DNA of 64,000 bases from Piromyces finnis finn (taxonomy: Eukaryota > Fungi > Neocallimastigomycota): positions 124,001 to 188,000 of the forward strand of contig MCFH01000013.1 of assembly GCA_002104945.1 (NCBI GenBank). The letters are read 5' to 3'. The position numbers were made by a program, and so were the translations under genes. Below the pieces are notes generated by a model. It was not told the DNA's origin, did no database searches, and saw nothing but the letters and a program-made list of their open reading frames with translations. This document shows, piece after piece, positions 2,064 through 50,280 of this stretch. Numbering within the stretch: position 1 is the first letter of the stretch; the number at the start of each line of letters is the position of its first letter.

Positions 2064-2998
2064 CGACCACAGTCTTTTTGGAGGTGTCCTGGTTGATGGC
2101 AGCGATAACACACTTTTTGGGAAAAGTTACCAGACGCATGAGGGGTATTCCTAGGCTGAGTGTAAGATGAATTATACCTGTTTTGATACTGATTTGGAGG
2201 ATTATAAGCAGGATAAGGAGTGTAATATTCAGATTGATGATAAGTGGCATAACCATCACCCATTGGTGCAGGAGGCCTGTTGTTGAAATAAGGATCTGAG
2301 TAACTAGGTCCAGGAGCTTGGACAGGAGCAACCGGTGTTGAAGGATAATTGTAACTGGAATTATTGGAATGTCCATAAGAATAAGGGTTAGGATTGGAGT
2401 AATGACTATCCATCGGACGATACTGTGGTGTATAAGCACCATGAGGATAATAACCAGGAGTAAAGCTACTGGAATAAGAGGCGTATTCTTTCCAGTATTC
2501 GTGGTTCTTTGCAGTTTGGCAAGCCTCATCAATAGTTGCGGGCTCGCGAATGGTGAGGGCATGTTGTAATTCTGGACGACTACGGATAGCATGCATATAG
2601 TCGTACACAGAAACTCTGGGGCGATATTCCGCATCCAAAGAATGGTAAAGGTCCAAAAACCTATTATTGAATTCATCCACTGTTTCTCCAGGACGAATAA
2701 CCATAATCTTTAATCGGCGAAAACCATCCTGTTTGTTGTTCCAATAGGCTAACCTATTCCTAATTGATGGCATACATTCATCCAAAGAGGGTGGCCTGTT
2801 CCACATGCGTTCAAACCTAATTAGTTCATCAACAATTTCTGGGAAATCGATACAACCGACAATGGTATCGAACTTTTCATTCTCATCAACAATGCCTTCT
2901 CTAGAAAACCATGCTTCCATCTGACGTTTCCACACATCTTCGTTGCAATGGGTTTTGTCCAAGATAGGAAGTCTATAATACGAAGATCTATTAGCCAT
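2051..2998 (-). CDS. gag: Gag of element A with C-terminal CCHC zinc knuckle
   Basis: 315-aa ORF ending CYRCHQPGHLQKDC; capsid-like segment (GETVDEFNNRF); directly upstream of pol. Confidence 0.9.
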   Translation of the reverse strand: MANRSSYYRLPILDKTHCNEDVWKRQMEAWFSREGIVDENEKFDTIVGCIDFPEIVDELIRFERMWNRPPSLDECMPSIRNRLAYWNNKQDGFRRLKIMVIRPGETVDEFNNRFLDLYHSLDAEYRPRVSVYDYMHAIRSRPELQHALTIREPATIDEACQTAKNHEYWKEYASYSSSFTPGYYPHGAYTPQYRPMDSHYSNPNPYSYGHSNNSSYNYPSTPVAPVQAPGPSYSDPYFNNRPPAPMGDGYATYHQSEYYTPYPAYNPPNQYQNRYNSSYTQPRNTPHASGNFSQKVCYRCHQPGHLQKDCGRLNH

Positions 2999-3046
2999 AG
3001 CAAAAATTTACTGAAATTTAAAGGGTTAGGAATTAATGAGTAAACA

Positions 3047-3096
<50 letters not shown>

Positions 3097-3490
3097 ATTT
3101 AACTGAAAATAATATAACAAACTAATTATTTAATATATTTTATTTATCAAGTGTAAAGAAATGTGTTCTTAACAATAAAAAAATTTATAACAATTTACTA
3201 AAATAACTTAGTAAATATAAAACACTTTTATCTTACTGTTAATTATTAATATTTAAAATTATTATTAAAAACACACAAATTTTAACTTAATAGGTTAGTG
3301 TTTAACAATAATTTATTAATTAATAAAAACTCAATTTTTTTTAAATTTAGAAAAATCCACTCATATTTATATAAAAATTTTTAAAATTAATCTAAAAGAT
3401 TTTTTACAACTTAAATTTCTTAACCAATCAAAGAATTTCGAGTTGATAAAAAATCAAAATAAAAAAATTAAAATCAAAATAAAAAAAAAA

Positions 3491-3558
3491 GTAATTTAGA
3501 AGTCTCGAACTCAAGACATTCGGACCAAAGTCTTAGTTACTAACCACTAAGACAATTT
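3491..3558 (-). other. Degenerate tRNA-like segment (Pol III A/B boxes followed by oligo-T) in the leader of element A
   Basis: TAGTGGTTAG (A-box-like, 3549-3540), loop CTTTGGT (TTG at anticodon position), GTTCGAGAC (B-box, 3510-3502), T10 run at 3490-3481. Acceptor and anticodon stems do not pair canonically. Confidence 0.45.
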
Positions 3559-3591
3559 CTTTATTTCTATGATTCGTTACATCAAGTTTAG

Positions 3592-4421
3592 TGTAAAATA
3601 TTGTATTAGTTAAATGTATTAGTTAAATAATGTATTTAATACGTATGTAGAACAATGTATAATGTATTGAATTAATGTACCGTAAATTTTACAAAAATTT
3701 ACATCACAATACATTAACATAAATTTATGTAAATTTAATTTTATGATAAGATAAAGTTTTGATGATAAAATAAAATTTTAAAATTAAATAATTTTTAACC
3801 AATAAATATTTGAGATAAGAAAAAATTTTTTTTATAAACTAAGCCTCAAAATTAGAAATAAATAAATTAAATATATGTTTGAAATATAATCAACCATATA
3901 GTAAATAAATCAAAACTTTATTTTAAGTTTAGAAAATTCTTTAGTAAATAAATTGAATTTAAATAGTTTAATACAAATAATTTCTTTTAATAAATGTATA
4001 AATGTAAACAATGTAAAATTATAATATTAAAACATGTATATTAGAATTTATTCAATTTATTTAAAAAGTATAAATAAAGAAAATTTCTCAACTATTGAAA
4101 CGATAGTTGGAAAATAGTAATTAATCCAATTGTATCATTATTATTAATAATATTAGATTATTAATAAAGCTTATAATAAAACATTTTTTATTTAATTGAA
4201 AACTGATTACCTAGCGAAGGCTCTGGTTAAATAACCTTCGTGGTAAAGTAATCAGCAGTTGTCATAGTTTAGAAGATAAAGTTATTATTTAAATAAATAA
4301 AAAAGTATTAAAAAATAAATTGGAATTTTTTCTTTCTTTTGTTTTGTATTGTTGTTTTGTTAGCACAGACCTAAATCCAATAATTTAATTTAAAGGTTAG
4401 ATTTAAATTAAATATTTTACA
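3592..4421 (+). repeat. 5' LTR of element B
   Basis: Direct repeat of 9287-10116; same length; no difference seen in the stretches compared by eye; TG...CA ends. Confidence 0.97.
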
Positions 4422-4432
4422 ATTTTCCAACT
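4422..4432 (+). promoter_or_regulatory. Self-priming (Tf1/sushi-type) primer binding site of element B
   Basis: ATTTTCCAACT directly after the LTR is the exact reverse complement of AGTTGGAAAAT at 4105-4115 in the LTR, 36 nt downstream of the start of TATAAATA (4069-4076); no TGG tRNA-type PBS. Confidence 0.85.
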
Positions 4433-4481
4433 TTTTAGAATAGTGGATTTACCTTTGTGTGGGAAATAAATAAATAAATAA

Positions 4482-4518
<37 letters not shown>

Positions 4519-4568
4519 AAATAGTGAGAATTTAATATTAGAATTAAATTCGGGGATATATATATGTG

Positions 4569-4603
<35 letters not shown>

Positions 4604-4646
4604 TGAATAATAGTAGAATAAATATAATAGATAGAATAGTATTATT

Positions 4647-4683
<37 letters not shown>

Positions 4684-44067: not shown

Positions 44068-44195
44068 TAATAATTATTATTTAATAAGGAAAATGTCTCA
44101 TAACTCTAATAAATATGATTTTTTTCATTCATAATTGAGTAAAAATGAATATTCTTATGGTTTTTATAATACTCAAATAAAAATTTATTTGAGGG

Positions 44196-44412
44196 TATTA
44201 AGAGTTGTTTAATTTAGGTTTATAATTATGTCAACTTTATTAATATATTTTATGATAAAGAACTACTTGCGTTACATTCTTCTCAAACTACATGTATTTA
44301 TACATTTACATTGTGGCTTAAACATATAATTAAATACAATATATACAAATACGTTTTAATACATTTCAATACATTTGAATACATGTGACATAACGTTTCA
44401 CATATTCTAACA
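44196..44412 (-). repeat. 3' LTR of the copia-type element
   Basis: Preceded on the minus strand by the PPT; reads identical to 48868-49084. Confidence 0.93.
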
Positions 44413-44783
44413 TTCCCCCTCAAACCTAATTTTCTACTAAGTAAAATTTGGTTTGCTGGTGAATATGTGCATTTTATTATTTCTAAACTATTAACTATAA
44501 ACTAAATCTAATGTTTAAAATTTTTATATTTCATTAACTGGAATTTAAAATATTTCACATATATTATTCACTAATTGCTTTAAAGAATTTAAATATTACC
44601 CTATAACTTCGTTTTTATGGATAAACTGAAAACCTTTGTATAATTGGGTAGTATTAAAGTTTAAAATTTGGATTGGATATTCATAAATTGTTATACCATC
44701 CATTAAGGATTGAAAACCCTTCCGGTTTTACATTATCCTATAAACTATATTGGTAATCTCTCTGAGATTTACACAGAATTATA

Positions 44784-45016
44784 GACAACACATGGTTTAT
44801 CTCTTTGATTTTACGTCCTTATGACAACGCATGGTTTACCTCTTTGGTTTTACGTTTTCTTAACAACTCATGGTTAACCTTTGATTTTACGTCCTAATGA
44901 CAACACATATGGATAACTCTTTTTGGTTTTACGTTCTCTTAACAACCTATGGTTAATCTTCTTGGTTTTACGTTCTTCGGACAACCTATGGATAACTCTC
45001 TGGTTTTATGTCCTTA
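44784..45016. repeat. Six degenerate ~39-bp tandem repeats inside the copia-type element
   Basis: Unit ACAACxxATGGTTxxCTCTTTGxTTTTACGTxCT. Confidence 0.85.
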
Positions 45017-46933
45017 TAATTACAATTTTCTTTAGAATATTAGCATAATTGTATTTCAATCTATTTGTAAATACTAATTAATAATGGTAAAATTTTAATT
45101 AAATTCTTAATAGTTATTTAGTTTATGTATATTGAATTTTAACATTTTCTTTTAGGTGTTTTTCCTTCCTTTTATGCCTTTTGTATTGATTAATTATTCT
45201 TATAATATTTAAGAATATTTTACTTTGTATTTGAAATTTTGTTCTTTTCATTTTTACATATTGAATATTGAATCTTATAAATTTTTACAATTTGAATTTC
45301 AATTCATTCTATTTATTAAGCCTTAGTTTCTATGCAATGTTTTAGTTATTTCCAATGTTTAACTAGAAACAAAAATTATTATCTTGAATTTTAAATTTCG
45401 TATATTCACTACTTCCCCCTCAAATCTAGATGTTTAGTAATAAATATTTAGATTTGAAAATGAGAAATTTAAATTTCATAAAATTTCATTCATTTTGCAT
45501 CAAATTTTCATAATAATGAATAATTTTCCATAACATATACGATAAGTATTAATACCTATATAAATAATAAATAACATATTCTAATGTTTTCATTCATTTT
45601 TCTCAATTGCTTATCCTTTAAAATATAGTGAAATAATATTTTCATGATAATATATTTTAATGTAGTGATAATCATAGAATATCAAACTAATGAATAAAAT
45701 ATTCCTCAATTATGTATTTCTTTACTTCAAATTAAAATAAGTAGATATACCAGTAAAATTATAACAAGTTAATATTGTAAGATAATGACATTTAAAATAT
45801 CGATTATTGAAGAGAATAAAGTTCTTCTAAATTATATCGAAGTCGGCTCGGTTAATTAGAATGTCAGCTAATTGGTCGGCGATCACTCACTACGTTGAAA
45901 GTGGTGATTTATATATGAGGTTACTAAATCACCGTAAATTATATTTTAAAACGGCGTCACAACATTCTTGAATGTTGGTAATAAATAAATATGATGAATC
46001 AATGTCATCTAAATCTAAGGAGCCCTTACTATGAAGGTGCTACATTGTTATTGATGGGACCAAATTAAATATATATAGGTCTAAAACCATCATTAATAAT
46101 TATCTATGAATATAACTCATTTCACGCTAAGTTAAATCATGATAAGTTGTTAAAATATTATTGAATATACCCATTTCACGCTAGGTTATTCAAAGTATAT
46201 ATATATGTAGAATATGCGCATTTCACGCTAAGTATTTCTAACTTTAATAAATTACCTCATTTGAAATATTTGCTATGTATATTAGCAATAACAGCCTACG
46301 GGATGAGCATTTGACCAGTAATATATTTGCTTTATAGGTAGCAATAATTTAAATAATGCTTTTGAGGCTAAATATTATCTTAAAGTATTGTTATAATGAT
46401 TTAATTCAAAGAATAGTATACTGGATTAAATTATATAATACTGATTTGAATGAAATTATCATAAAGAAATTGATTGACATTTTCACAAGGATAGTTTCAA
46501 TGTTCATTGCATAATTTCATTACAATAGGGTATTTTATACAAACTTATCAAATAATGTTTAATTATTCTAATTCATGTTTCTAATTGTATAAATTTTATG
46601 TATTTTCTTTATGTTCTATCTTTCCTCTATGGCGGAAAGAATATTTTTTCATTAAAATAGTAGTAGTTAAAATATTTTATTATTGCACAAATAATTTATT
46701 TACTTGAAATAAATATATATGTTTTCAATAACGATAATGCTATTTTATGAATGTTAATAAAACTAGTTCTTTTAAAAATAAAATGAATGTTTGTGGAAAC
46801 GTTGATTGTATGTTTATGAATATTTACATAATTGAATATATGGATTTTTAAATGATAATGAATGTAAATTGACATAGTGAGTAGATCAAAATCAAATTAA
46901 TAAATTTAATAAATTGAGTAAATTAGGAGAATT

Positions 46934-48139
46934 CTAATATACAATATTTATTTGCCAAAACATTACTAACATTAAAGTAATAAATACATTTGTGAGAGAA
47001 ATATATTTGAAGTTTACAGTTCCGTTTGAATCTTCTTGTTCTTCATTAAGTTGGTTATCAATAATATAATAACCACAAGATTCACTATCAACTATATTAA
47101 TGTCATTATAAATATTAGTTATATCGGTATTGTTAGAGATAATTGGTGTATTGGATATACTGACTTTACTAATACTAGCATTATAATTAAACTCGCATAA
47201 CTTATTAATATAAAATATACCAATATTATCACAAATTTCTTTTCCAACTTTAGTATATTTTTTTTTAAAATTGGTATAGGTTGAATAGTCACAACCTGCA
47301 AATAGTGCAGCCTCAGCTGCTCTTCTTCTTACTAATCCTGGAAAAGGTACTAAAACACCGTTTACCCTTCCTTTGTAGTATTCTAATATCTTTTTATTAA
47401 TTTCTTCCTTTGTTCTCTGACCATTATTAGTTAATTCATCAATACTTCCAACATTATAAGCAAAACTACATAATGCATCATATTCATTTTGATTCCAATT
47501 ATATTTATAATTGAAAAATTTTACCATAGGACCATATTTTTTTTCGATTGAAAGTTTTAACCATTCCTCTGCAGTTTTTTCATCTATTGTTAAGCCCTCT
47601 TTGATATATGTGCCAGTAATATCATAGTTATCATTGGTAGTACCGTAACCAATAGTCCATTTTCCAACCGAATCTTTATAGGCAGTTAATATACATCCTT
47701 CAAAACCTTTGATTATGTTAATTATATTGTCACTTACTTTTAATTGATCATTATTTAGATTTGTATTTGGAACGCATAGTTGAACAACACTCTTTCCTGG
47801 GCATTGGTCCCTATATCTCGTGTAAGATTTTTCTGAACAGTCATCTTCATTTATATTTTTACATTTTCCTGTACTTGGAAGAGTTGTTCCATCTGAAAGT
47901 TTTTTGACATATTTTATACAGCATTTAATCTTTTCCGAGTCATTTTTACAATAACCTGGATATTTTGTAGCATTGCCTTCTTGTCCTTTATATATTATAC
48001 ATTGATCCTCATTAACGCAAACACCTGTTCCGACACTTTCTACATAACATTTTTGATTTTCAACAGCAATTACCAATGGTAGAATTAAAATTGTCGAAAA
48101 AATGTTTAAAAAATATATTACTTTGCTTCTTAATCTCAT
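46934..48139 (-). CDS. Secreted GH24 (phage-type) lysozyme with Cys-rich N-domain and hydrophobic C-tail
   Basis: Signal peptide; catalytic E-x8-D-x5-T in FEGCILTAYKDSVGKWTIGYG; NEYDALCSFAYNVG; GLVRRRAAEAALF; intact intronless 401 aa. Confidence 0.92.
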   Translation of the reverse strand: MRLRSKVIYFLNIFSTILILPLVIAVENQKCYVESVGTGVCVNEDQCIIYKGQEGNATKYPGYCKNDSEKIKCCIKYVKKLSDGTTLPSTGKCKNINEDDCSEKSYTRYRDQCPGKSVVQLCVPNTNLNNDQLKVSDNIINIIKGFEGCILTAYKDSVGKWTIGYGTTNDNYDITGTYIKEGLTIDEKTAEEWLKLSIEKKYGPMVKFFNYKYNWNQNEYDALCSFAYNVGSIDELTNNGQRTKEEINKKILEYYKGRVNGVLVPFPGLVRRRAAEAALFAGCDYSTYTNFKKKYTKVGKEICDNIGIFYINKLCEFNYNASISKVSISNTPIISNNTDITNIYNDINIVDSESCGYYIIDNQLNEEQEDSNGTVNFKYISLTNVFITLMLVMFWQINIVY

Positions 48140-48852
48140 TCTTTGGAGTATTTATAATATTAATATATTTGATGAAATTTAATAACTCAATTGTAAATAA
48201 TTATATAAAATAAATTTAGAGTTCACTAGTTAATTTATACTGTTTGTAGTGAATAAAGTAAACTGAGAATGAAATTCTATTGTTTATTTAATTCTAAATT
48301 TATATTTCGAATTTGTACTTTATTAACTTTGAATTTAATTTTACAATATTTATTCATAAATAGTTTCTAAAATAATTAATTCTTTTCAATTTTGAGTACT
48401 TTAATTTATTTATTTCTGAGTTTTAAGCATTGGCTGTATTTGAATAAAATAAATTTTATGTTGTTTCAAAATTATTTAGAGTTCAATTTGTTTTGTTTAT
48501 TTTTAAATTTAAAGATTTAAATTAAAAGTTAAAAAAATTTAAAATTCAATTTTAGAATAATTTGCTTTCGGAATTTAAAATTGTCTATATTATTTTAGTA
48601 TAAGGAAACTTTGTTTATATCAGGTAATGTTTTTCTATTTTAGATTGCCATTTCAATTTCAAAATTTTGAAATCTCAAATTCTAGATCTCAAAACAATTT
48701 TACCAAACATAGATAATTTCAGATTAAATAATTTAATTGTAATGGTTAGAATTTCCTACTGTTTTCTCCTTTGTCATAATTTAGTGTCCAGCACTCTTAT
48801 TCCATTTCTAAGAATCCTTTTAAGAGGCATTGAGATTCTCTCTTGAGAGTCA

Positions 48853-48867
48853 ATGAGACTCTTAATC
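48853..48867 (-). promoter_or_regulatory. PBS complementary to the anticodon arm of tRNA-Lys(CUU)
   Basis: Plus strand ATGAGACTCTTAATC abuts the LTR; GACTCTTAATC is the conserved anticodon arm of eukaryotic tRNA-Lys(CUU). Confidence 0.75.
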
Positions 48868-49084
48868 TATTAAGAGTTGTTTAATTTAGGTTTATAATTA
48901 TGTCAACTTTATTAATATATTTTATGATAAAGAACTACTTGCGTTACATTCTTCTCAAACTACATGTATTTATACATTTACATTGTGGCTTAAACATATA
49001 ATTAAATACAATATATACAAATACGTTTTAATACATTTCAATACATTTGAATACATGTGACATAACGTTTCACATATTCTAACA
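48868..49084 (-). repeat. 5' LTR of the copia-type element
   Basis: 217 bp, followed on the plus strand by TSD GAGGG. Confidence 0.93.
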
Positions 49085-50280
49085 GAGGGAAACAAATCGA
49101 TTATTATTATTATTTCCTTTTTTTTTTATTTTTTCCTTATTATAACAATACATAGCATTAAAAGAAGGTTCAAATTTAAAACGAGGAAATTTAATTCTTT
49201 TTATTCCTTCATAGCTTATTATTTCCATATTGTTAAAGCACCAATAAGCAAATTAACAAATAGTTAAAAAAGTATATTTTACAATTATATAATTAAATAT
49301 AATATCAATATAATATATACAATAAAAATATAATACGAATATTTATAATATATAACATAATATATAAAAAATATATACATGAATATTAATACTAAAATGT
49401 TTGTTATTATTTTTATAAATTACCATTACAATTTAGTAGTGGTATTTTTAATAATTTATCACAATAATATGATCTAATGTTTTACATTTATTTTTGTAGA
49501 AAAGAGACTTTTTTTTTTTTTAGAGTTATATACGAATTATACAATTATTAAAATAATTAAAGTTTTTATTTTTTATATATCTCATAGTTTTGTATATTTT
49601 ATAATTATAGAAATTACTATTATTTACGAAATCTTTATTTTAGTTATTATTTGTTTAGTTTATTAATAATTGATTAAACTAATATAATTGTTTAATCAAA
49701 AAAAAAAAAAAAAACAATATAAAAAACCTTTTTTTTTAATTTATTTATTATTTATTTATATTAAATTTTATTTTATTGTTAAATTAAACAATTAAACATA
49801 AATATATAAAATAAGGTTCTTTATTCATATTGAGTAATGGTATACTAAAAAAAGGAAAAAAAAATTTTAATATAAATTTTTAAACTATTTTTGTACAACA
49901 ATAAAAAATATATTATTTAATAAAACAATAATACAATATTATAATATATAAAATTAATAAAATGCGGATATTTTCAAATAATAATAATAATAATAAAAAA
50001 AAGATATATAAACAAGAAATTTTCTTTTTTCCTTATTAGAATATCAAAATTTAAAAAATATATATAAATAAATAAATATTTATATATATAAATAATAAAA
50101 TAATAAGAAATTATAGAAATTAAAAAAAAAAAAGCAAATTAATAAATATAAAATATTATTAATTTGTTAAATATTATTTAAATATAAACATAAACATATT
50201 AGTTAATCTTAATATTTAATTTATTTATTTTATTATAGTTTTTTTTTTTTATTTATTTATTTAAAAATATATAAATAAAA

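Follow-up and report, generated by a model that had tools for sequence, protein, structure and literature searches.

We describe here a long terminal repeat (LTR) retrotransposon of the anaerobic gut fungus Piromyces finnis that carries, in place of its own genes, an intact gene for a lysozyme of the phage type. The element occupies positions 44196-49084 of the window, by which we mean the whole 64,000-nt stretch of DNA that was analysed (contig MCFH01000013.1, positions 124,001 to 188,000 of the forward strand; assembly GCA_002104945.1). Taken together, our results make it highly probable that this element is a young copy of a non-autonomous family of the Ty1/copia type, 4.4-4.9 kb long and similar to the large retrotransposon derivatives (LARDs), which multiplies a secreted muramidase of glycoside hydrolase family 24 (GH24).

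The element lies on the minus strand, and the repeat at 48868-49084 is therefore its 5' LTR. On that strand it is laid out as CCCTC / LTR / GATTAAGAGTCTCA / interior / TTGAGGGGGAA / LTR / CCCTC. The two 217-bp LTRs (TGTTAG...CTTAATA; 3' LTR at 44196-44412) are 100% identical and are flanked by the same target-site duplication (TSD), CCCTC on the element strand or GAGGG on the plus strand, at 49085-49089 upstream and 44191-44195 downstream. The 14-nt primer-binding site (PBS), GATTAAGAGTCTCA, directly follows the 5' LTR at 48854-48867, and the polypurine tract (PPT), TTGAGGGGGAA, abuts the 3' LTR at 44413-44423. The LTRs start with TG and end with TA, where the classical form is TG...CA; relatives in the genome that encode an RVT_2 reverse transcriptase end with ACA, AAA or ATA.

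Past the 5' LTR, the interior consists of a leader common to all subtypes of the family (48650-48867, minus strand; element positions 218-435), a cargo block that is the variable slot of the family (46904-48649, minus strand; element positions 436-2181) and 2.5 kb of non-coding DNA (44424-46903, minus strand) that is 92-100% identical across all family members. The cargo block comprises the lysozyme open reading frame (ORF) of 401 aa (46934-48139, minus strand), which is in sense orientation to the element and starts 729 nt past the 5' LTR, and the region upstream of it. The only other ORF of 60 aa or more inside the element is one of 60 aa nested within the lysozyme ORF in another frame. Inspection of the interior for ORFs and by profile found no RVT, gag, pol or integrase ORF or remnant. 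For want of gag and pol the element is non-autonomous and not a copia element proper. A sequence-only reading of the same DNA had noted the identical-looking 217-bp LTRs, the GAGGG duplication, the PPT and PBS, a sense GH24 frame about 730 nt past the 5' LTR and the lack of an intact gag or pol, and all of these features were recovered here.

That the element has spread by retrotransposition came from its copies elsewhere in the genome. Our genome search found at least 41 LTR copies at ≥99% identity among 139 candidates, and the family comprises at least 28 elements in addition to solo LTRs. The exact 20-nt junction between PPT and LTR start occurs at 28 genome sites, and that between LTR end and PBS at 36. 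Some copies were read only in part, with the 3' ends of four read as short pieces. Six elements carry the lysozyme, three an ORF of 432-434 aa and one an ORF of 514 aa, one carries a broken ORF, and at least 11 carry a piece of a seryl-tRNA synthetase gene (SerRS-type elements). TSDs were checked for the six lysozyme copies, four SerRS-type copies and ten solo LTRs, and each LTR pair and solo LTR examined is flanked by a matching duplication of its own, 5 bp long as is typical of copia elements. The lysozyme copies, named here after their contigs, have six different TSDs, namely CCCTC for the window element (C35), ATTAT (C222), ATTCT (C43), TAAAC (C182), TGGAT (C189) and GTTTC (C200), and therefore represent six independent insertions and not a one-off capture. 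The suggestion that the element amplifies its cargo, which had been made from the window element alone, is thus confirmed by six lysozyme copies at six sites.

The copies on C35 and C222 are near-identical over 4.9 kb, a likeness that segmental duplication or an assembly artefact could also produce. However, the similarity between lysozyme copies ends exactly at the LTR ends, and a comparison of the flanks beyond the LTRs showed that the six copies share nothing there, while each has its own TSD. Solo LTRs with duplications of their own also exist, and the SerRS cargo lacks the introns of its parent gene. We consider that duplication or misassembly in place of retrotransposition has next to no probability as the source of these copies. 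On C200 (C200:348490-352118), a stretch of 1.3 kb contains three copies of the LTR. Two of these copies are each preceded by a PPT and followed by an identical flank, which suggests a tandem or recombined arrangement of LTRs.

The 401-aa protein matches the Pfam family PF00959 (Phage_lysozyme) with an E-value of 1e-23 and 84.5 bits against a cut-off of 22.3, over residues 144-276 and the full length of the profile (1-125 of 125), and it matches solved lysozymes with E=5e-18. It is ordered as signal peptide, Cys-rich module, GH24 domain, helical extension, Asn/Ser-rich stretch and hydrophobic tail. The AlphaFold model, built from a 68-sequence alignment, has a mean pLDDT of 78 and consists of an N-terminal hydrophobic helix, a confidently modelled all-beta part (about residues 30-125) of the module with 10 cysteines (about residues 26-125), the GH24 domain (about residues 137-281; pLDDT 84-98 over 131-290), a short helical extension, a disordered Asn/Ser-rich stretch (324-380) and a terminal hydrophobic helix (382-400). 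Judging from the sequence and the model, the N-terminal helix is probably a signal peptide, and the C-terminal part could serve as a stalk followed by a glycosylphosphatidylinositol (GPI) signal or a membrane tail.

The modelled GH24 domain has the fold of phage endolysins (Foldseek E down to 1.8e-10; target-normalised TM-score up to 0.81). It also matches, by sequence (E=3e-7) and by fold, the CWBD-GH24 protein of Trichophaea saccata (PDB: 8b2s), a characterised fungal muramidase with an N-terminal binding domain (PMC10394673). Residues E147, D156 and T162 lie in a FEG...AYKD...WTIGYG motif that aligns with the same motif of solved endolysins, and their spacing is that of E11, D20 and T26 of T4 lysozyme. 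No identical record was found when the protein was looked up by its exact sequence. With the GH24 fold predicted, the triad intact and the ORF apparently under positive selection (see below), the earlier description of the cargo as an antibacterial-type gene is supported by these analyses.

The Cys-rich module has ten invariant cysteines and is predicted with a pLDDT of 88 when folded alone. Searches against solved structures, 8b2s included, gave no match (Foldseek E ≥0.77; VIA Z ≤2.1), and we therefore do not equate the module with the SH3-like domain of 8b2s. In the ESM Atlas, modules of the same shape (TM-score 0.57-0.76) occur in proteins with a Phage_lysozyme domain (Basidiomycota), an NLPC_P60 domain (Mucoromycota), or an SH3_3 or Peptidase_C39_2 domain. 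In P. finnis itself, the module heads ordinary host genes, which include a cluster of six GH25 genes (C184:234673-250437), two Phage_lysozyme2 genes on C146 and a cysteine-peptidase-like gene on C180. From the company it keeps, the module is most likely a wall-binding or targeting unit for enzymes that attack peptidoglycan.

Comparison of the interiors showed that all members of the family share element positions 1-435 (LTR and leader) and ∼2182-4672, and differ between them. In SerRS-type elements, whose leader is 83-91% identical to that of the window element, the slot (positions 436-2181) is filled with unrelated sequence. These elements are 97-100% alike in at least 11 copies, ten of them at ≥99%, and have no ORF. 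We took their cargo to be a seryl-tRNA synthetase and then matched it to a host gene on C1 (C1:661600-664900); in one such element (C112:502383-506665), it lies at element positions 1134-1909. The cargo consists of four pieces that are 83-89% identical to the host gene, contiguous in the element and split in the gene by three introns of 160, 95 and 92 bp. Since the pieces are contiguous and intron-less, the cargo was captured from spliced mRNA. It is a 3' fragment of that mRNA and is full of stops. Our search upheld the amplification of the lysozyme proposed by the sequence-only reading, but most elements with the same LTR carry the SerRS pseudogene instead.

Other copies have the slot filled with other ORFs. 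The copies on C46, C157 and C192 have ORFs of 432-434 aa (L037:610-1908, minus strand; L038:1501-2802, plus strand; L039), in which a signal peptide and a Cys-rich module like those of the lysozyme (75-77% identity) precede a different domain of 260 aa. In an Atlas feature search, the 260-aa domain pointed to the DUF3289, DUF6402 or colicin-M-like bacterial toxin families with a score of 0.89, which is below the trust line, and a word-based homologue search found relatives of this cargo only in sequences resembling those of anaerobic fungi. The copy on C151 has a 514-aa ORF (L052:1498-3042, minus strand) that joins a domain of the 260-aa type to an NlpC/P60-like domain and a tail of the lysozyme type, and that on C188 (L040:1522-2805, plus strand) encodes two Cys-rich modules and an NlpC/P60-like domain, broken by a stop. 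The NlpC/P60-like assignment is tentative and is suggested by a weak pairwise match (E=8e-4) and by Cys and His motifs. Pfam searches with the 433-aa cargo and the C151 and C188 ORFs gave no match with a threshold as lenient as E=10. On C152 lies a diverged, older relative with degenerate LTR pieces and the same PBS. Its 482-aa ORF combines the Cys-rich module with a PPPDE-like peptidase motif, and it, too, has a similar tail.

The lysozyme copies fall into subtype A (C35 and C222), subtype B (C182, C189 and C200) and a recombinant (C43). The C43 copy is a mosaic with a leader like that of subtype A (99.3%) and an ORF like that of subtype B (98.0%), as expected from template switching between co-packaged RNAs, although ordinary gene conversion would give the same picture. 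Subtypes A and B are 91.5% identical in the ORF and 96.4% in the 728-nt leader just upstream, while copies of the same subtype are 99.8-100% identical. The ratio of nonsynonymous to synonymous substitution rates (dN/dS) between A and B is 2.57 (NG86), 2.36 (YN00) or 2.12 (maximum likelihood), and by region it is 3.8 in the Cys-rich module, 3.2 in the GH24 domain and 1.9 in the C-terminal part. As NG86 can mislead in AT-rich DNA, non-coding sequence of the two elements compared was used to calibrate a neutral spectrum. Against this calibration, six of the 76 non-stop changes are synonymous where 27.5% would be expected (P=2e-5), and the 102 differences between A and B include no stop codon where 5.5 would be expected (P=0.0035). 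All cysteines and the catalytic triad are unchanged between the subtypes. C35 and C222 differ twice within the ORF, and both differences are amino-acid changes. Because dN/dS exceeds 1, synonymous changes are deficient, stops are absent, and the cysteines and triad are kept, the lysozyme ORF appears to be under positive, diversifying selection and not decaying. The ORF has been kept open, in contrast to the decayed SerRS cargo of the same family. The comparison among cargo copies that the sequence-only reading had proposed thus gives a dN/dS of 2.1-2.6 between subtypes, with no stops.

The lysozyme could conceivably be a neutral hitch-hiker, open only through the youth of its copies and of no use to the fungus. 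The most successful sublineage carries the dead SerRS pseudogene, the near-identity of copies within a subtype means that their intactness is not independent evidence, and the sequencing-run contigs that match the lysozyme are of uncertain type. Such a hitch-hiker would not, however, be expected to go without stops over 102 differences, to exceed the local neutral expectation in amino-acid changes, or to conserve all 10+ cysteines and E147/D156/T162; moreover, the homologue in Neocallimastix is also intact (658 aa) inside a decayed element. We therefore regard neutral hitch-hiking as unlikely, and selection for a useful lysozyme as the better account of the ORF.

That the family is mobilised by copia elements is suggested by its primer site. 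All 14 nt of the PBS are complementary to nt 27-40 of tRNA-Lys(CUU), the anticodon stem-loop, whose gene (tRNA-Lys(CTT), L069:1470-1543, minus strand) is in the same genome; a genome search with a tRNA pattern having a fixed T-arm gave no match, and the exact anticodon-arm pattern found the gene. The PBS thus pairs with the anticodon arm and not with the usual 3'-CCA end. The 20-nt pattern of LTR end plus PBS occurs at ∼200 genome sites within 3 mismatches, and among the 100 pattern sites listed the 14-nt PBS is unchanged in nearly all. For many of the sites within 3 mismatches, an RVT_2 match in an open frame of 1300-1800 aa follows 3-4 kb downstream. The identical 20-nt junction is found 3.2-3.9 kb upstream of RVT_2 matches in frames of 1333-1542 aa (on C123, C227, C191, C159, C155, C24 and C46), and near-identical junctions of PPT and LTR start lie ∼0.7 kb downstream of other RVT_2 matches. 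Because its cis signals are shared with RVT_2 elements, our results support the view, already put forward from the window, that the element is of the copia type, non-autonomous and mobilised in trans. Several RVT_2 families of the genome have this primer site for the anticodon arm of tRNA-Lys(CUU), with LTRs ending with ...TTCACA, ...ATAAAA, ...TTAACA or ...TTAATA.

The initiator tRNA-Met primes Drosophila copia and yeast Ty5 through its anticodon stem-loop. The P. finnis PBS likewise pairs with the anticodon stem-loop region, but the tRNA is tRNA-Lys(CUU). Judging from the junction sites, priming by tRNA-Lys(CUU) would be a habit of the whole copia lineage in P. finnis, unlike the initiator-Met half-tRNA of copia and Ty5.

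Two copia elements illustrate the possible source of proteins. One, on C123, has a 274-bp LTR and a 1542-aa polyprotein frame. The other (C46:895900-901500) has 310-bp LTRs that are 99.7% alike and the order gag-PR-IN-RT, and it matches both junction motifs of the lysozyme element. It contains a long microsatellite coding for Asn and Ser between integrase and reverse transcriptase, and its PPT lies only ∼190 bp past the reverse transcriptase match. It seems to have no RNase H and is thus defective, but the family to which it belongs is a candidate helper family. Both elements have the junction motifs in common with the lysozyme element, and are unrelated to it in LTR body and leader.

Several observations weigh against the reading of the family as a helper-dependent copia lineage that multiplies a useful lysozyme. 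The commonest cargo is a dead pseudogene, and the family spreads regardless of any benefit from its cargo. The dN/dS rests on two subtypes and is effectively one comparison, and it could come partly from recombination with unsampled paralogues. Regarding the helper, the link to RVT_2 elements consists of junction motifs of 14-20 nt only, the element at C46:895900 is itself defective, and a genome-wide search for an autonomous element that has this LTR body or leader found none. Of the autonomous copia partner with the same LTR and PBS that the sequence-only reading had in mind, only the junction motifs were matched, and not the LTR body. The cover of the ORF by sequencing runs is also patchy. 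A search of sequencing runs gave four of uncertain type ('RNA?'), kept as contigs without strand, starts or level; pieces at ≥95% identity span the greater part of the ORF in one run and stretches of it in two more, and the depth of the contigs is far higher over the shared 3' part than over the ORF. The ORF lies 729 nt downstream of the LTR, behind a leader that contains several ATGs. It is therefore doubtful that a full-length LTR transcript could be used to translate it, and one has to assume splicing or an internal promoter. Two short contigs from Neocallimastix begin 38 and 85 nt before the ATG, and one extends just past the internal PPT-like block; if these contigs are transcripts, they hint at an internal promoter.

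Where the lysozyme came from can be approached through its relatives. A search of the genome with the PF00959 profile found the six elements and one weak hit outside the LTR family, of 27 bits in a 288-aa open frame (C186:237212-237577, minus strand), which may be a divergent second GH24 gene. Strong GH24 thus exists in P. finnis only as retrotransposon cargo. The best match outside the genome is a protein of 658 aa with 55% identity, whose 90%-identity cluster includes ORY32373.1 (Neocallimastix californiae) and KAG4095273.1 (N. lanati); its ORF is intact and encodes a Cys module, GH24, further Cys modules, chitin-binding and NlpC/P60 domains, and a tail. The next relatives are many GH24 proteins bearing signal peptides, encoded on contigs of 1-1.6 kb and probably from other anaerobic gut fungi, which have Cys-rich, chitin-binding or repeat modules and similar hydrophobic tails. 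A third group consists of GH24 endolysins that bear choline-binding, PG_binding_1, CW_7 or SH3 modules. One of these endolysins (61% identity) directly follows a holin, and the prophage in which it lies also has tail genes and encodes a serine recombinase. In a quick, unrooted tree of GH24 domains, the P. finnis and Neocallimastix proteins form a clade (SH-aLRT 98) within a eukaryote-like group (90) that adjoins bacterial and phage sequences. We considered that the GH24 domain was taken directly from a phage, and rejected this because in the tree it belongs to the older fungal GH24 clade. The likeliest history, as far as the tree can tell, would be that the gene passed long ago from Firmicutes or their phages into anaerobic fungi, and that the retroelement captured it when it was already fungal.

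The Neocallimastix homologue occupies a single syntenic locus beside CotH and CBM_10 genes in metagenome contigs and in N. lanati (GCA_016946835.1; L077:5137-11780; L078; L083). About 1.2 kb upstream of its ATG, we found GATTAAGAGTCTTA, which differs from the P. finnis PBS by one mismatch. The sequence that comes next is colinear with the family leader, including the part common to SerRS-type elements. Downstream of the gene, three or four blocks are colinear with the shared 3' interior (67-76% identity) and reach the internal PPT-like site. A direct repeat flanks the locus, of 221-225 nt at 88% or of ∼1.15 kb at 65% under lenient scoring. The relic may have had longer LTRs, a tentative suggestion given that AT-rich DNA aligns easily. 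On these colinearities, we read the locus as a decayed, fixed relative of the same element, which suggests that the lysozyme has been in such elements since before Piromyces and Neocallimastix split. Capture of the gene by P. finnis along with its flanks would be an alternative, but leaves unexplained the PBS and leader shared with lysozyme-free elements.

The protein might conceivably serve the element itself, as an envelope- or exit-like protein for movement between cells or species. The association between gene and element looks old, the ORF stands where gag would stand, in sense orientation, and its signal peptide and membrane- or GPI-type tail are as in env proteins. Yet sister elements with a pseudogene or another cargo transpose at least as well, the fungal cell offers a muramidase no substrate, and ordinary hydrolase genes of the host encode the same N-terminal module and tail. 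We consider an element-serving protein very improbable, and prefer a lysozyme that serves the fungus.

Within the non-coding 3' interior, a second, internal copy of the PPT TTGAGGGGGAA (45413-45423, minus strand) is followed by sequence resembling an LTR start. This copy is exact, is found in every family member and lies 1 kb upstream of the true PPT; it could be a central PPT, or else what is left of an LTR that was older and longer. Repeat finding further identified a tandem array of ∼6 copies of a 39-bp unit (44779-45017, minus strand), for which RNA folding predicts weak structure only, and a 20-nt motif that occurs three times (CATTTCACGCTAAGTTA-like on the plus strand) in a G+C-richer island (46115-46235, minus strand). 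A similar motif is found 3' of the Neocallimastix homologue gene. An Rfam search of the element matched no RNA family. The window is very AT-rich (G+C 14-40%), and the element sits in a 7.3-kb intergenic space with a long ORF on each side. Matches at the protein level (BCR36DRAFT_588401 and BCR36DRAFT_371635) point to P. finnis as the source.

How the family may work can be proposed as follows. It has kept its cis signals only, namely the LTRs, the PBS for the anticodon arm of tRNA-Lys(CUU), the PPT, the leader and the 2.5-kb 3' part, while its sublineages have filled one slot with different host sequences taken up as RNA. Autonomous copia elements with the same PBS, PPT and LTR ends would supply the proteins that package the element RNA, reverse-transcribe it and integrate the product, presumably with cleavage of the tRNA. 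Each jump adds one more lysozyme gene copy, six to date, and leaves a 5-bp duplication that is new. The lysozyme would be secreted, probably anchored at the surface and used, most plausibly on the peptidoglycan of gut bacteria, and retrotransposition could supply both dosage and variants of it. More tentatively, and with less than even probability, the family may be a long-lived 'cassette platform' of anaerobic gut fungi, in which template switching at the reverse transcription stage swaps catalytic modules (GH24, NlpC/P60-like and the 260-aa domain) behind one secretion and binding module, the copies are multiplied and gut bacteria select the variants, the association being older than the Piromyces/Neocallimastix split.

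Gene capture by LTR elements is known from plants, for example maize Bs1 and the captured-gene elements of rice and sorghum, as are non-autonomous LARDs and terminal-repeat retrotransposons in miniature (TRIMs). Like these, the P. finnis family has kept LTR, PBS, PPT and TSD, lost gag-pol, taken up cargo derived from host mRNA and would be mobilised in trans. The captured cargos known from plants are mostly gene fragments or chimeras without clear function. The P. finnis family differs in carrying a complete gene of a secreted enzyme in six copies, apparently under positive selection, in having several alternative cargos in one slot of one family, and in residing in an early-diverging fungus. 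Acutely transforming retroviruses capture cellular genes such as src by template switching. They resemble the P. finnis element as defective, helper-dependent LTR elements whose own genes have been replaced by a spliced cellular gene, with recombination at the RNA level (compare C43). The P. finnis element is, in contrast, endogenous and vertically inherited, and has an extracellular enzyme as cargo.

Among fungal proteins, GH24 lysozymes of Coprinopsis cinerea are reportedly induced by bacteria and are among the antibacterial proteins studied in its response to them. In these and in the T. saccata muramidase, as in the P. finnis protein, an N-terminal disulfide-rich module precedes GH24 in a secreted protein. 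The P. finnis module (10 Cys, ∼100 aa), on the other hand, matches no solved fold and is accompanied by a hydrophobic C-terminal tail, and none of the T. saccata and C. cinerea GH24 genes has been reported inside a retrotransposon. A further parallel is the ToxB Helitron-like element, which amplifies the ToxB effector in Pyrenophora tritici-repentis (bioRxiv 10.1101/2025.11.13.688278). There, too, a secreted 'weapon' gene of a fungus is multiplied by the transposon that carries it; the ToxB element is, however, a DNA rolling-circle element with tandem copies in one region, while the P. finnis element is an RNA-copied LTR element with dispersed copies.

In a literature search with most subscription journals outside its scope, no publication that describes a lysozyme within an LTR element of anaerobic fungi came up, nor one on a retrotransposon family that carries and multiplies intact lysozyme or other secreted hydrolase genes in fungi. 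GH24 has been counted as expanded in "Piromyces sp." (PMC8778642), and a phage-tail lysozyme of P. finnis has been listed among transferred genes (bioRxiv 10.1101/2021.12.02.471044). The LTR-borne copies described here would explain the GH24 expansion counted for Piromyces.

We would like to point out that gene capture by LTR elements is usually viewed as a source of fragments and pseudogenes. The P. finnis family shows two outcomes side by side: a dead fragment of a housekeeping gene, and a complete gene of a secreted enzyme that is open, apparently adaptive and present only as retrotransposon cargo. Of particular interest are an intact cargo that appears to be positively selected, a slot with multiple fillings, and signs of an ancient association between gene and element. 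The family would offer a natural system in which to study helper-dependent LTR elements, the gain of cargo by template switching and the fight of anaerobic gut fungi against bacteria. Other fungi already supply marketed feed muramidases (PMC10394673), and the enzymes of this family are candidates for the same use. The family also points to a concrete way for a gene that came from phages or bacteria to be multiplied and diversified quickly once it is inside a fungus.

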